Shown here one piece after another: positions 3,320 through 10,274 of a stretch of DNA of 64,000 bases. Source of the DNA: Tubulanus polymorphus (lineage: Eukaryota; Animalia; Nemertea); assembly GCF_964204645.1 (NCBI RefSeq), contig NC_134036.1, forward strand, positions 2,480,001 through 2,544,000, given 5' to 3'. The translations under genes and the position numbers were made by a program. The notes below the pieces were generated by a model. It was given only the letters and a program-made list of their open reading frames with translations. It made no database searches and was not told where the DNA came from. Numbering within the stretch: position 1 is the stretch's first letter; the number at the start of each line of letters is the position of its first letter.

Positions 3320-4381
3320 ATGTTCACTCCTAGCGACAATACGACAAGTCACCCGGTCCTGCAGCTCAGCTGGTGTCAGAGAGTCCAAACTCATCCGATT
3401 AGATTTAAGTTCAGTTTCAACATTAAAATGTATTTGGGATGTTATCTACCGGCGTCAGTACTAGGTATAACATTCAACGCATTCACGTTATTAGTTCTAA
3501 AACGGTTTAAATCTGATGTTTATTTTCTCATCAAAATTCTCGCTATAAACGATCTGTTGTTTATGGTCGCTACATTCATTCTTTATCCGCTGAGAACTGC
3601 GTACATTTACGCCGTTTTGGGAGATATTTTGTTCCGCGCAGATGATTGGAATCTCGGGTGGATTTTTATTTCAATATCTTTGCCGTTTTTCTATATATTT
3701 CAGACGACTCGTAACTGGTGCACTGTACTGCTCAGTCTAGAGCGGTTAATCGTCGTATTGTTTCCAATAAAATCTCGTAGAATTCCCAGAAAGCAGATCT
3801 CACAGGGCGCAATGTTATTTATTGCATTTTTGGGTTTTTGTGGTCATTTAGGTCAATTTATACCCCGCAGATATTTTGGATTCATGAACTGTCCTGACTA
3901 TTGGCCTTATATCACATTACGGCGTGGACAGATCCGGTACAATTTTAACATAGGATTCTGGATTTATTCAGTTTCTGAGCGGACTTTTTTCTTATATCTT
4001 ACTGTCACGTTTCCTCTGTTCATTTTGGTTTTCATCAATGTTATTCTTATTTCGGCGACATTTTACCGTCGGGTTACTCGACGTTCACAGCTCGGTGTAA
4101 CTGATGAATCGTCTAGAAGGGAAATGAGGGTTTTAAGGATGGTTTTATCAGTTGTTTTATTGTTTATTATTTGCGAAGGTTTGGGCTTTGTGGATCGTCA
4201 GCGAAAGTGGTTCCCCTTAGAAAATATCGGTTTTTCTTTTAGAATAATCGCATTGGCATTTTCTATTGTTGATTCGTCAGTAAACTTCATCATATATTGT
4301 GTGACAAATGAAAAATTCAGAAAATCGTCCGTTGACATTCTCAGTAAAGCTTGTTCTAGAAAAGGTTCTTGTTTTCGATGA
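3320..4381 (+). CDS. Class A GPCR, copy 2 (tandem duplicate of 679-1740), 353 aa
   Basis: Same motifs as copy 1; only 3 aa differences (PVPQL/PVLQL, RVARRSEL/RVTRRSQL). Confidence 0.9.
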   Translation: MFTPSDNTTSHPVLQLSWCQRVQTHPIRFKFSFNIKMYLGCYLPASVLGITFNAFTLLVLKRFKSDVYFLIKILAINDLLFMVATFILYPLRTAYIYAVLGDILFRADDWNLGWIFISISLPFFYIFQTTRNWCTVLLSLERLIVVLFPIKSRRIPRKQISQGAMLFIAFLGFCGHLGQFIPRRYFGFMNCPDYWPYITLRRGQIRYNFNIGFWIYSVSERTFFLYLTVTFPLFILVFINVILISATFYRRVTRRSQLGVTDESSRREMRVLRMVLSVVLLFIICEGLGFVDRQRKWFPLENIGFSFRIIALAFSIVDSSVNFIIYCVTNEKFRKSSVDILSKACSRKGSCFR

Positions 4382-6212: not shown

Positions 6213-7448
6213 ATGTTCGGTTTCTCGCGAGTAATCGCCTTGATGATTTTGTCGTCGTCTTGCTGTTCTCTGATTGGCTGCGTGCCGATAAAACCGGAAA
6301 ATATGGAAGATTATGAATACTATTATTACTACGGACCTGTGGACGAGTCGAAACCCGATACGACGGGGGACGCAGGTAATACAAGTGGCGCCACCACAGG
6401 AGCAACCGATCAACTTGATGTTGTCACCTTGAAATCGGACGATGCCAATGCCGGGGATAGCGGAGGACTCTTCGGTAAAATTTTCTCCTGGAACTCGGAC
6501 GAACAAGGCGCCGGAACCGGGGACGGACAACCGACGGATGCAGACAAGAGCACCGATACCGCAGCGCCACCTACAACTCAACCCGCAGTTGATTTAGCCG
6601 ATTCGAGCTTTGTACAACCACCTGTGGCAACGCAGGACACGAAGACGGTGCCAGGTGACGCTACTAAAGATGCGACGCGAGAGGGCGCTGCCGGTAAAGC
6701 AACAGATGGCGCCACTGGTGGCAGAAAACCATCTGAGTCAAAGACGATCGATAAAGATGGAAAAAAGATGAAAAAAGTAAAGAAACTGAGAAGAAAAGAC
6801 AAAGCTCCCCCTCGTGGTGGTGATCTGAAGTTCGGAGCGGTAGCACCCCCTGGTGGACAGCAACCACAAATGATGCAACCACCGAATCAAATGAACCAAG
6901 GTCAATTCGTACCCCAAAGTCAACCGGGAATACCTCCTCAAGGCCAGTTCGTGCCACAAGGGCAGCCGGGTCAAGGTCAGTTCATGCCACATCAAGGCGT
7001 ACCACAGACTGGTCCACAGGGACAAGGGCAATTTATGCCACAAGGTCATCCTGGGCAAGGTCACATGCAGCCGCCTGGCCAAGGTCAGTTCGGACAACAA
7101 CAGCATCCGGGTGCTCAACAAGGTCATGGTCAATTCGTGCCGAACCAAGGTCAATTCGCTCAACCACAAGGTCATCCTGGCCAAGGGGGTCAACCCGGAC
7201 ATATGCCAAACCCGCAACAGGATCAGCACGCAGAGGCGCCATCTACCGGATATGATACAGCACAGACGCACGACGATGACGATGATGCAGACGATGCGTC
7301 GACCTCTTCTTCGCCTCATTTTACTGATCACCCTCCACCTCCTCCACCTCCTCCTCATTATCAAAATCCACAATTCCACCAACAAAACATTCCACATCAG
7401 CCACCTCCACCACCACCTCATCATCAGCAGCAGCAGCAACAACACCAG

Positions 7449-7483
<35 letters not shown>

Positions 7484-10274
7484 CCAGCAGCAGCAACAGC
7501 ACTTTCAACAGAATCCACCTCAATATTTCCAACCTCCACATCCACCCATGTACTTCAACAATCCACCTTCGCCACAATACCCGAACTATCAACAGTACTT
7601 CTTCCCGGAGGGAGTATTCTACAACGCGCCACCTGTCGGCGAAAGACGGCCGTCACGTGAGGTGTACAGTCAACTGAAGAAGAGACGAAACCCGCGTAAA
7701 CAAGTCGTTTTCGAGGATCTGTTCATTCCGGATCGCTGTTACGTCAAAAGCAAACTCGGTGACGTATTACGCATACGATTCAATACGACTTTAGAGAACG
7801 GTACAGAAGTGGACAGTAGGTAAGTGTCAATCAAACGCTCGCCCCTCCCCTCACCATCCCCGTCCCCGCCCATTTCTTAAACATATACCTTAATATGCTG
7901 CTGGTTAAAAGCCGTCCATTTCTCAAACGAAATGCATCAACCTCAACTGGCATCTCCAGCCGTAGCAAAGTCAAAAACTAACCCCTTTTTTCGCTTCTAT
8001 TCGGTCTACAAAGGGTCGAAAATATGGTAGACATTGGGTTCCTAATACGCAGAGCATCTTGATTCAAATTATGCTCAAAAGGTGTCAGCAAAGTAGCAAG
8101 TTTAGGCAATGTTCTGCAGTTTCCCGTCCCCGCCACTATCCAACTCTCTTCCCAATGATATGACCTCCATTTTCAATTCAATCGGCATCCTCCAAATTCT
8201 GCTCCACTTCTTAAACATTTGACTCATCAGTGATGTCGGTTTTTCTATATTCTATCTTACAGATACGGCACCGACAGACCGCTGGAGTTGAGGACCGGGT
8301 ATCGGTTAGTTTTACCCGGCATGGAGAAAGGTGTGATGAACATGTGTCCAGGACAAACCCGAGCCGTGATCATTCCGCCATCACTAGCGTTCGGAAACGA
8401 GGAAGGACTAAGTACGTACTTTGAGAGCCTGAGAACTTTCCGGAGTTATCGTGAAAAAGTTTAAGCTTGAATCGCTTAAGTTTGGATTTGATCCCTCGTT
8501 GAAATAATAGAAGTTACCAATTGCTGGGCTTAACCTTTTCATGAAGCCGAGCCAAAATTACAGGATGCCTGGGTCTGGAAACCAGACAGATAAAATCTTT
8601 TCAACAAAGTGGAACAATGCTTAAGCGATTCAAAGTTATCTTTTATGTCGACCAATTTTTTTTCAAGCTTTCGTTCAAAATAAAATGCGAAAAATATTCG
8701 AAATCCTTTCAAGATAAAAGAACGTTAATCCTAGTGATCAATTTTGAAATCTCAATTTTATAATCTCAATTTCACGCGTGAAATATCAAATTGAATTTCC
8801 AACTCACGTGTGGATTAATTTTCGTCTGTCAATATTTAACTTTCCTGTGTTTGTCCTTCTTCGTCGCGTTTGGATTTTGTTATTAGAAGATTTAAAAAGT
8901 TCGTAATCGGAAAATTCCAAGAAATAGAAGACCACGAAAAAGTAAGATAAAATTATTTTGTTATCTTTTTTTGTTCCTGCAGACGGGAAAGTACCTCGCA
9001 ACTCAACTCTCGTCTTCATCGTCGAACTGTTGGAGATCGTTCCGCCAAAAGAGGGCGTTAGAAACGTTTTCAAGATGATCGACGCCAATAACGATAATAG
9101 GCTCACGTGGGCTGAGGTGAGTTTGACTTTTCAGGCGCGGATTCAGACGGTAGCACTGTAGGCGTGTGCTACCGTCGCGAAAATCTCGTGCTTTTTTCCA
9201 TTTTTTTACAAGACGAGGCAGATAATTTTAACCAAAAAAAAACACATGATTCTTCAAGATTTTGGCTTTATTACCTGGGGCCAGTTGCTCAAAGGTTGGT
9301 TAAAGATAACCGGCCGTTAAATACCATAGTAACAATGAAATTTCAATTGTCACCATATCAACTATCCACTGGTTAACTCTAACCAACCTTTGAGCAACTG
9401 GCCTCTGGAAACTACATCTCGATGCAGTTAATTTGCTAGAAAGCACTTCGCGTCAGGACTTTAATTGCTTGGAAATTGCAGCAAAGCAGATTTTTCACAA
9501 TACCCATTTTGTATCAAAATGCCCTTTTTATAAGTTGTGCTACAGTGGTCCCTGGACCCACCCCTGCTTCTGCCTCTTTCTCGGACCTTGTAAAATTCTA
9601 CCCACATTGGATCAGCTTCACCGAGAACCTTAGTGTCTGATGTACCACAATTTGGTTCACTGAGCGACGGAGATCTCTGTGGCGACAACCACTGCCAGGA
9701 CTAGGTGAAGGGTAACCGGCAGGGCCTGGTTAACCGTCAGTGTTGTCGGAACTTGGTCCAAAGCTCTTACCAGGAGGCCTGTCAAAATTCTACACTCCAG
9801 AAGAACAAATGGTTTTACATTCACTATAGTTCTTCGGATTGCCTGTGATAGTGAATCTCTATGGTTCCAGTTTTAGAAATATATGTCACTATTTCATTTT
9901 GATATCACTTTTGAATAGGACCTTCCATAAGAAAACATTGCACGCACTGATTTATAGAACCATAAAACTCTACATGCAGCTCTAGTTTATGGATTTGAAT
10001 TAAAGGTGTTTTGTGAAGATGACTTGGCCAAATGAGAGCAGTCTCGTACGTCCCTGAAGATCAAATTTTTATTCTTTGTTTCCCCATTTTTTAGGTGTCC
10101 GACTACTTCTTATTCGTGAAGCGAAGGCAAGGTTTGGACCACGTCGAGGGCGGCATCGACTACGACGAACACAGACACTTGGTTAACAGCGTGTTCGAAA
10201 ACGAAGACAGAAATCGTGATGGTTTAATTTCGTTTACCGAATTTCGCGGCCCGAAATGGCACGACGAACTGTGA
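6213..10274 (+). CDS. ER-resident FKBP-type peptidyl-prolyl isomerase (FKBP7/FKBP14-like) with long low-complexity N-terminal insert; 4 exons, ~689 aa
   Basis: Exons 6213-7819, 8263-8411, 8983-9116, 10095-10274 join in frame at GT-AG. Signal peptide (MFGFSRVIALMILSSSCCSLIGC); FKBP domain (GDVLRIRFNTTLENGTEVDS...MCPGQTRAVIIPPSLAFG...STLVFIVELL); EF-hands DANNDNRLTWAE and DRNRDGLISFTE; C-terminal HDEL. Confidence 0.9.
9278..9404. mobile_element. 127-bp PIF/Harbinger-like MITE (family A), FKBP intron 3
   Basis: TIR ggccagttgctcaaaggttggtta / taaccaacctttgagcaactggcc; CTG on both flanks; equal-length copies at 16493-16619 and 41386-41512. Confidence 0.8.

Follow-up and report, generated by a model that had tools for sequence, protein, structure and literature searches.

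On the forward strand of the window (the whole stretch of 64,000 nucleotides that was analysed), positions 6213 to 10274 hold a real-looking gene of Tubulanus polymorphus, composed by exon arithmetic of four exons and 689 codons. Within an overall interpretation to which we attach moderate confidence, it is probably an intact protein-coding paralogue of an ER-resident chaperone of the FKBP14/FKBP22 type. The encoded order is a signal peptide, a low-complexity stretch of about 471 residues, an FKBP domain, two EF-hands and a C-terminal HDEL. All searches were made exon by exon rather than with the joined, spliced protein, and they yielded the following features:

6213-7819, forward strand: exon 1, 1607 nt of coding sequence ending in phase 2, with signal peptide, disordered insert and the first 41 or so FKBP residues
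6213-6284, forward strand: putative signal peptide (residues 1-24), Arg6 and then a hydrophobic core of 17 residues, recognized from its sequence
6285-6347, forward strand: tyrosine/acidic cluster with the motif EDYEYYYYYG, net charge -5
6348-6737, forward strand: acidic block rich in T, D, G and A with one NTS sequon, net charge -11
6738-6827, forward strand: lysine-rich basic block, net charge +9
6828-7217, forward strand: Q/G/P block of 130 residues, one of them charged, with seven degenerate QGQF units (6897-7162)
7218-7328, forward strand: acidic block with poly-D, net charge -11
7329-7622, forward strand: P/H/Q block of 98 residues, one of them charged, with two poly-P runs, poly-Q/H (7419-7507) and a Y/F/N/P/Q block
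7623-7697, forward strand: basic linker by sequence composition, with a KKRR dibasic site just 5' of the FKBP domain
7698-7819, forward strand: N-terminal strands of the FKBP domain (human FKBP2, 4nnr, E 0.0024; 38% identity to the paralogue)
8263-8411, forward strand: exon 2, FKBP core with Met at the usual Trp59 position (Pfam FKBP_C, E 1.7e-8)
8983-9116, forward strand: exon 3, final FKBP strand and EF-hand loop 1 (DANNDNRLTWAE), from Pfam, paralogue and splice sites
10095-10274, forward strand: exon 4, EF-hand loop 2 (DRNRDGLISFTE) with HDEL and TGA stop, from Pfam, PDB and paralogue

The open reading frame that carries exon 1 (6213-7823, forward strand) comprises 536 open codons and is preceded by an in-frame stop seven codons 5' of the ATG at 6213; the hydrophobic core of the signal peptide spans residues 7-23 and has a mean Kyte-Doolittle hydropathy of 2.16. 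Both the exon 1 donor (TAG/GTAAGT at 7819/7820) and the exon 2 acceptor (CAG/A at 8262/8263) are canonical, in keeping with the predicted splicing of exon 1 to position 8263. Exon 2 passes the Pfam cut-off for FKBP_C (PF00254) as a single exon, has PDB matches that include FKBP14 (4dip/4msp) and FKBP11, and is 45% identical to the paralogue. The EF-hand matches of exon 3 (E 1e-3) and exon 4 (E 2.4e-5) stay under the curated Pfam cut-off in such single-exon queries; both 12-residue loops carry D1, N3, D5 and E12, and exon 4 also matches FKBP14 chains. The reading frame ends in CAC GAC GAA CTG TGA (10260-10274), so that the HDEL foreseen in the original prediction lies at 10260-10271 directly ahead of the TGA. 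With signal peptide, FKBP_C, two EF-hands and HDEL all detected, the proposed identity as an ER FKBP appears sound.

Human FKBP14 and FKBP7 are about 210-220 residues long, and their FKBP domain begins immediately past the signal peptide. The chain in the structure 4msp has 200 amino acids. Human FKBP14 (FKBP22) and FKBP7 (FKBP23) share with the T. polymorphus protein a signal peptide, one FKBP domain, two EF-hands and HDEL (PMC10607241), and the human FKBP14 structures 4DIP and 4MSP are matched by exons 2 and 4. In contrast to this compact layout, in which the FKBP domain follows right after the signal peptide, 471 disordered residues (25-495) intervene here, and the family assignment as FKBP14/FKBP7-type goes no finer.

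The FKBP pocket of the T. polymorphus protein has diverged at four ligand-contact positions: in the sequence alignment (FKBP12 numbering), F, V, M and F stand where FKBP2 and FKBP14 have Y26, F36, W59 and Y82. This divergence is no proof of inactivity, because FKBP11 likewise has Leu at the W59 position.

The same genome contains a paralogue (XP_074661063.1, "FKBP14-like [Tubulanus polymorphus]", 291 aa, C1:24.48 Mb) that also has four exons, with all three intron positions and phases identical, 36-48% identity over the FKBP and EF-hand parts, and an HDEL; Trp59 is absent from it as well, and Leu takes its place. It carries an acidic, aromatic linker 3' of the signal peptide, but this linker measures about 65 residues as compared with about 471 at the locus studied here. 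The equal intron positions together with the short linker of the paralogue indicate that the insert is, as judged from the two gene structures, a lineage-specific expansion within exon 1. No significant similarity was detected between the linker of the paralogue and the insert (best E 0.5); a (F/Y)SW.S..D motif common to both was considered as a sign of homology and was discarded as not significant (E 2.2). Both this paralogue with its linker of about 65 residues and the divergence of the pocket had been overlooked in the original prediction.

The insert had been estimated at about 480 amino acids, close to the 471 residues counted, and was said to contain seven GQF-containing repeats as well as poly-D, poly-P/H, poly-Q and Y/F/N/P/Q stretches, all of which could be located in the blocks of exon 1. 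The GQF units number exactly seven (starts at 6897, 6939, 6972, 7023, 7080, 7125 and 7146), are all in frame, and follow each other at spacings of 42, 33, 51, 57, 45 and 21 nt. These units are degenerate and irregularly spaced, and TRF reports no tandem array for them; it does report a CAG array of 25.7 copies at 7425-7501. Glutamine (29%), glycine (22%) and proline (19%) dominate the Q/G/P block (6828-7217), and the segment from residue 206 to 470 contains 75 Q, 24 F+Y and 54 Pro among its 265 residues. The insert contains 21 His, and its charge pattern is blocky: an acidic and a basic block precede the neutral Q/G/P block, which is followed by a second acidic block, a neutral P/H/Q/aromatic block and a final basic one.

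The insert is predicted to be intrinsically disordered: AF2, run on the exon 1 product with no alignment, assigned a pLDDT below 50 to 427 of 535 residues and placed a helix at residues 402-433 only, while the mean scaled hydropathy (0.346) lies below the boundary value of 0.422. The Q/N-rich composition, the few charges and the spaced aromatic residues would fit its description as prion-like. Proline, however, disfavours amyloid-type prion domains, and its share of about 20% (residues 206-470) makes the label doubtful; "prolamin-like in composition" is fairer. The suggested likeness to glutenin holds for composition but not for homology, since an exhaustive HMMER search of 1.84e9 (1.84 billion) protein representatives returned no homologue of the insert at E <= 0.001. 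Cereal prolamins such as HMW glutenin resemble the insert in their Q/G/P-rich repeats, spaced aromatics and ER-lumenal synthesis, and they self-assemble in the ER lumen into protein bodies. Unlike in prolamins, the units of the insert are irregular (7-19 residues apart), charged blocks separate the neutral ones, and the region as a whole forms part of a retained chaperone.

Word-indexed searches of a 15-billion-protein collection gave no match to the whole exon 1 open reading frame or to residues 470-536 alone, the ESM Atlas held no homologue of the insert, and within its own genome the insert matches only itself. On these searches, the insert would be an orphan region with no detectable relative and so far confined to one species. 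The RefSeq model of the paralogue is present in the 15-billion-protein collection but a protein with any part of exon 1 is absent from it, and public annotation may therefore lack the exon or the whole gene; neighbouring single-exon open reading frames are likewise absent. A literature search found no paper on an FKBP14 with a disordered insert, nor one joining the terms FKBP, HDEL and glutamine-rich. The long orphan disordered insert appears to be new in a real-looking gene whose FKBP14-type ER chaperone architecture is known.

Several lines of evidence bear on whether the insert is coding. Exon 1 is free of stops in its own frame, whereas the two remaining forward frames contain 16 and 20. 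All seven QGQF units lie in frame 0 at spacings that are multiples of three, and the 12-nt core of the unit varies only at positions 3, 6, 9 and 12, all of them third codon positions; four randomly placed variable sites would fall in this way with a chance of 1 in 495. On a contig from another individual, a second haplotype differs by 8 substitutions and no indel over 1113 nt of the open reading frame, as against 4 substitutions and 1 indel in the 202 nt upstream, so that, small as these counts are, the density of differences in the insert is about one third of that in the upstream DNA. The frame is unbroken in at least two further samples. As for an internal intron that would excise the insert, exon 1 contains no acceptor with a T-rich tract like those of the three real ones; an in-frame GTAAAG donor at 6777 can be paired with AG acceptors where the CAG run begins, and splicing from 6777 to 7428, with a loss of 217 residues, is a formal possibility, but this sole in-frame pair is weak, the candidate acceptor being C-rich with 3 T in 15 positions as compared with 8-10 T in real acceptors. 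The in-frame units, the variation confined to third positions, the few differences between haplotypes and the lack of a convincing internal intron make the insert look translated.

We consider it moderately probable that a linker has grown into a disordered insert on a functional FKBP14-type ER chaperone, an explanation that covers the anatomy, the expansion and the proposed role of the protein. The linker, about 65 residues long in the other copy, would have expanded within exon 1 to about 471 residues after gene duplication, through duplication of QGQF units and triplet slippage in CAG, CCN and GAY runs. The whole protein would enter the ER lumen and be retrieved by its HDEL, with the FKBP/EF-hand module acting as a Ca2+-binding chaperone of proline peptides. 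The disordered arm might hold or recruit Pro/Gly/Gln-rich secretory clients beside the FKBP domain through many weak aromatic, Gln, Pro and His contacts, and the poly-Asp blocks might contribute low-affinity Ca2+ binding.

To our knowledge, ER-lumenal chaperones are nearly all compact and folded, and we know of few long Gln/Pro-rich disordered regions, and especially of few poly-Gln tracts, in the secretory pathway. If translated, the gene would provide a natural example of an ER folding enzyme that carries a long low-complexity arm, as well as a clean example of a disordered domain born from an existing linker after gene duplication; with a range of one species so far, the insert would be a curiosity that carries a testable idea.

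A possible, though rather unlikely, alternative is that the gene is real and translated and that replication slippage and unit duplication produced the insert as a neutral by-product, in a linker for which any length will do, so that it would be a spacer without a specific role. The CAG, CCN and GAY runs are nearly pure, the paralogue functions with a linker of about 65 residues, and a homologue is absent everywhere searched, hence there is no demonstrable long-term conservation. In the small polymorphism counts, exon 1 has a pN/pS of about 0.58, as against three synonymous changes out of three in the folded exons 2-3; this ratio and the nearly pure CAG tract fit weak constraint and recent slippage, and the exact content of the insert may not matter. 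The neutral by-product is, however, difficult to reconcile with the QGQF peptide, which is kept in seven old copies whose divergence is confined to synonymous sites and thereby points to selection on the peptide, with the lower density of differences relative to the upstream DNA, and with neutral blocks so nearly free of charge as would not be expected from slippage alone.

Less probable still is the reading given in the original prediction, namely that the insert makes the protein phase-separate in the ER lumen, in a condensate where the FKBP domain would be brought together with Pro-rich cargo such as collagen, mucus or tube proteins. It is encouraged by the aromatics spaced by Q/G/P, the blocky charge pattern and the 21 His residues, and by the condensates of the ER lumen first reported in 2025-2026: PDIA6 forms multichaperone condensates there (PMC12431857, PMC12611771), and procollagen I, with 26.7% Gly and 19% Pro (the Q/G/P block has 22% and 19%), forms chaperone-enriched ones (PMC13255678). 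In addition, human FKBP22 acts as a chaperone for collagen (PMC10607241). These condensates offer a functional analogy, as they are ER-lumenal, Ca2+-linked and concentrate folding helpers, but they have no sequence or domain relation to the protein described here, and they do not depend on a chaperone that bears a long Q/P/G-rich disordered domain. PDIA6 condenses through folded-domain contacts and Ca2+ and not through a long disordered region, the design envisioned here is without precedent, and composition is only suggestive of such behaviour.

A quite improbable reading is that the insert serves as a client-like partitioning arm, whose Gly/Pro/Gln-rich, nearly uncharged blocks would allow the FKBP module to enter ER-lumenal condensates formed by collagen-like or tube/mucus precursors. 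Through the His-rich and poly-Asp blocks, the association would become switchable by the drop in pH and Ca2+ from the ER to the cis-Golgi; the cargo would then be released and the chaperone retrieved by its HDEL. Such a protein would amount to an HSP47-like escort cycle made from a disordered domain.

Equally improbable is that the insert stays outside the main product, with the locus silent or decaying, or with the low-complexity region removed as an exitron to leave an FKBP14-like protein of ordinary size: the lack of an annotated exon 1 protein in the collection, the in-frame donor at 6777 and one further sequencing run, guessed to be RNA and the single possible one of its kind, that gave no contig at the locus would fit this, but a frame of 1.6 kb has stayed open in the further samples, splicing would use canonical sites, every change in exons 2-3 is synonymous, the candidate acceptor is poor in T, and an intron would keep neither a reading frame nor variation confined to third positions. 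The three runs found in one run search to contain the locus cover its introns and hence represent DNA.

The gene under study is an intact FKBP gene on the forward strand, opening with a reading frame at 6213-7823 (+) that continues for 536 codons without a stop. Every donor is GT, a pyrimidine tract is present at every acceptor, and the summed exon lengths give 689 codons:

6213-7819, + strand: exon 1, donor TAG/GTAAGT
8263-8411, + strand: exon 2, FKBP_C by Pfam (E 1.7e-8)
8983-9116, + strand: exon 3, EF-hand motif by Pfam
10095-10274, + strand: exon 4, EF-hand motif by Pfam, HDEL end

In searches of solved structures conducted one exon at a time, the end of exon 1 resembled FKBP2, exon 2 resembled FKBP11, FKBP14 and FKBP2, and exon 4 resembled EF-hand proteins and the C-terminus of FKBP14; HDEL forms the C-terminal end of the predicted product. 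The predicted folded part fits the ER-type FKBP14/FKBP7 (FKBP22/FKBP23) proteins. When aligned with FKBP2 and FKBP14, the pocket residues Y26, F36, W59 and Y82 of FKBP12 are replaced by Phe, Val, Met and Phe, respectively. The W59 position lacks Trp elsewhere too: it is Leu in FKBP11, in the T. polymorphus paralogue XP_074661063.1 and in FKBP domain 3 of wheat FKBP73, the top PDB match of exon 2. Judged from the alignment, the folded part has diverged, not the insert alone, and since the pocket is still hydrophobic, this suggests that isomerase activity and FK506 binding are altered or weak, not that the fold is dead.

The N-terminus encoded by exon 1 is signal-peptide-like and is followed by eight segments:

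Segment 1: Tyr/acidic cluster
Segment 2: acidic T/D/G/A-rich block, net charge -11
Segment 3: Lys-rich block, net charge +9
Segment 4: Q/G/P block containing the QGQF units, exactly seven in number, at 6897-7162
Segment 5: poly-Asp block, net charge -11
Segment 6: P/H/Q block comprising two runs of poly-Pro, 30 residues of poly-Gln/His and a tail rich in Tyr and Phe
Segment 7: basic linker with a KKRR site
Segment 8: FKBP domain

The original prediction's account of the insert was borne out in detail. Each of the two neutral blocks carries a single charged residue (among 130 and 98 residues), and every one of the insert's 21 His lies in them. AlphaFold2, run with no alignment, assigned a pLDDT <50 to 427 of the 535 exon 1 residues and predicted structure only as a poly-Q/H helix and the initial strands of the FKBP domain; the charge-hydropathy measure likewise places the insert on the disordered side. 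The observation of an ER-type FKBP gene with an insert predicted to be disordered is confirmed, and the interpretation originally put on it has partial support. "Prion-like" is a poor label for a sequence with ~20% proline.

Directly after the signal peptide lies an EDYEYYYYYG cluster (6285-6347); acidic tyrosine-sulfation clusters have this appearance. The dibasic KKRR site directly N-terminal to the FKBP domain (7677-7697, residues 489-495) is accompanied by an RRK within the Lys-rich block (6738-6827). As speculation only, should the protein reach a convertase compartment, cleavage there would part an HDEL-less insert from the retained FKBP module.

Given an intact ER-type FKBP/EF-hand/HDEL gene whose insert is predicted to be disordered, is an orphan and is in frame, we consider it slightly better than an even chance that the product is an ER-retained FKBP/EF-hand module with a client-holding arm and weakly Ca2+-binding poly-Asp. 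The protein would be translocated into the ER and kept there, and its folded module would bind Ca2+ as well as peptides that contain proline, in the way FKBP22 acts on collagens (PMC10607241). Many weak contacts of the disordered arm may keep Pro/Gly/Gln-rich unfolded clients close, and the poly-Asp blocks may bind Ca2+ weakly.

So far only one species is known to carry the insert. An exhaustive HMMER search against 1.84 billion representatives gave no match to it at E <= 0.001, neither word-indexed protein searches nor the ESM Atlas yielded a relative, and within the T. polymorphus genome it matches its own locus only. The insert is an orphan. This absence cuts both ways, since the protein collection that contains the paralogue's RefSeq model includes no annotated protein in which exon 1 is represented, even in part. 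The genome (268 Mb, 77 contigs) contains at least 14 FKBP_C matches, and one further locus, on contig C1, matches the EF-hand/HDEL exon; its exon 1 leads to XP_074661063.1 (291 aa), a RefSeq FKBP14-like protein of T. polymorphus, which is a palaeonemertean ribbon worm. This paralogue shares 36-48% identity in the folded part and three introns at the same positions and phases; it too carries a linker separating signal peptide from FKBP domain, though one of only ~65 residues and with no detectable similarity to that of the gene studied. On the simplest account, a gene was duplicated and the linker then grew within exon 1 as units were duplicated and triplets slipped; the CAG array still has a purity of 87%. 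That the insert is a functionless, tolerated expansion is unlikely in our view. Elsewhere in the genome, 2 kb of one strand (C11:4879663-4881494) contains three FKBP_C matches, which probably belong to a single FKBP9/10-like gene with several FKBP domains.

The condensate scaffold that the original prediction saw in the insert gains plausibility in principle because condensates of chaperones that depend on Ca2+ are formed by PDIA6 within the ER lumen (PMC12431857, PMC12611771) and procollagen I (26.7% Gly, 19% Pro) forms chaperone-enriched ER condensates (PMC13255678). The likeness to the Q/G/P block (22% Gly, 19% Pro) is a compositional analogy only, and we rate such a scaffold as rather improbable.

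Four arguments from the sequence support translation of the insert. The exon 1 frame links signal peptide to FKBP domain over 1.6 kb with no stop, while the remaining two forward frames contain 16 and 20. All seven QGQF units lie in frame 0 at spacings that are multiples of three, and copies of their 12-nt core vary at positions 3, 6, 9 and 12 only (three silent changes, one Gln to His), a third-position-only pattern whose probability would be 1 in 495 were four variable sites placed randomly among twelve. A second individual's contig (spanning 6011-7325) differs by eight substitutions and no indels over 1113 nt of the ORF versus four substitutions and one indel in the 202 nt upstream, and none of the seven indels listed across the stretch falls in a coding exon. 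Three of nine exon 1 polymorphisms are synonymous (pN/pS ~0.58), as are all three in exons 2-3. A consensus scan found no acceptor inside exon 1 resembling the real ones; the sole in-frame internal splice pair sparing the signal peptide (6777 to 7428) has a C-rich acceptor with three T in 15 nt, versus 8-10 at the real acceptors. The three sequencing runs with the locus are DNA, because introns are covered, and the single run that may be RNA yielded no contig at the locus. A silent locus, or an insert that is spliced out, is the least probable reading, and a quite improbable one.

Intron 3 of the FKBP gene holds a very high-copy element (~9197-9824), with a summed contig depth of 1,000-45,000 in the DNA runs versus ~35 elsewhere, many joints and loose ends, and 66-nt inverted arms (9271-9336 and 9346-9411); its appearance is that of a MITE or a foldback repeat. 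Directly upstream of the gene lie two near-identical single-exon ORFs of 353 residues (679-1740 and 3320-4381, +), whose exact products were not found in the protein collection; they have a seven-transmembrane, GPCR-like look and are tandem duplicates at a spacing of ~2.6 kb.
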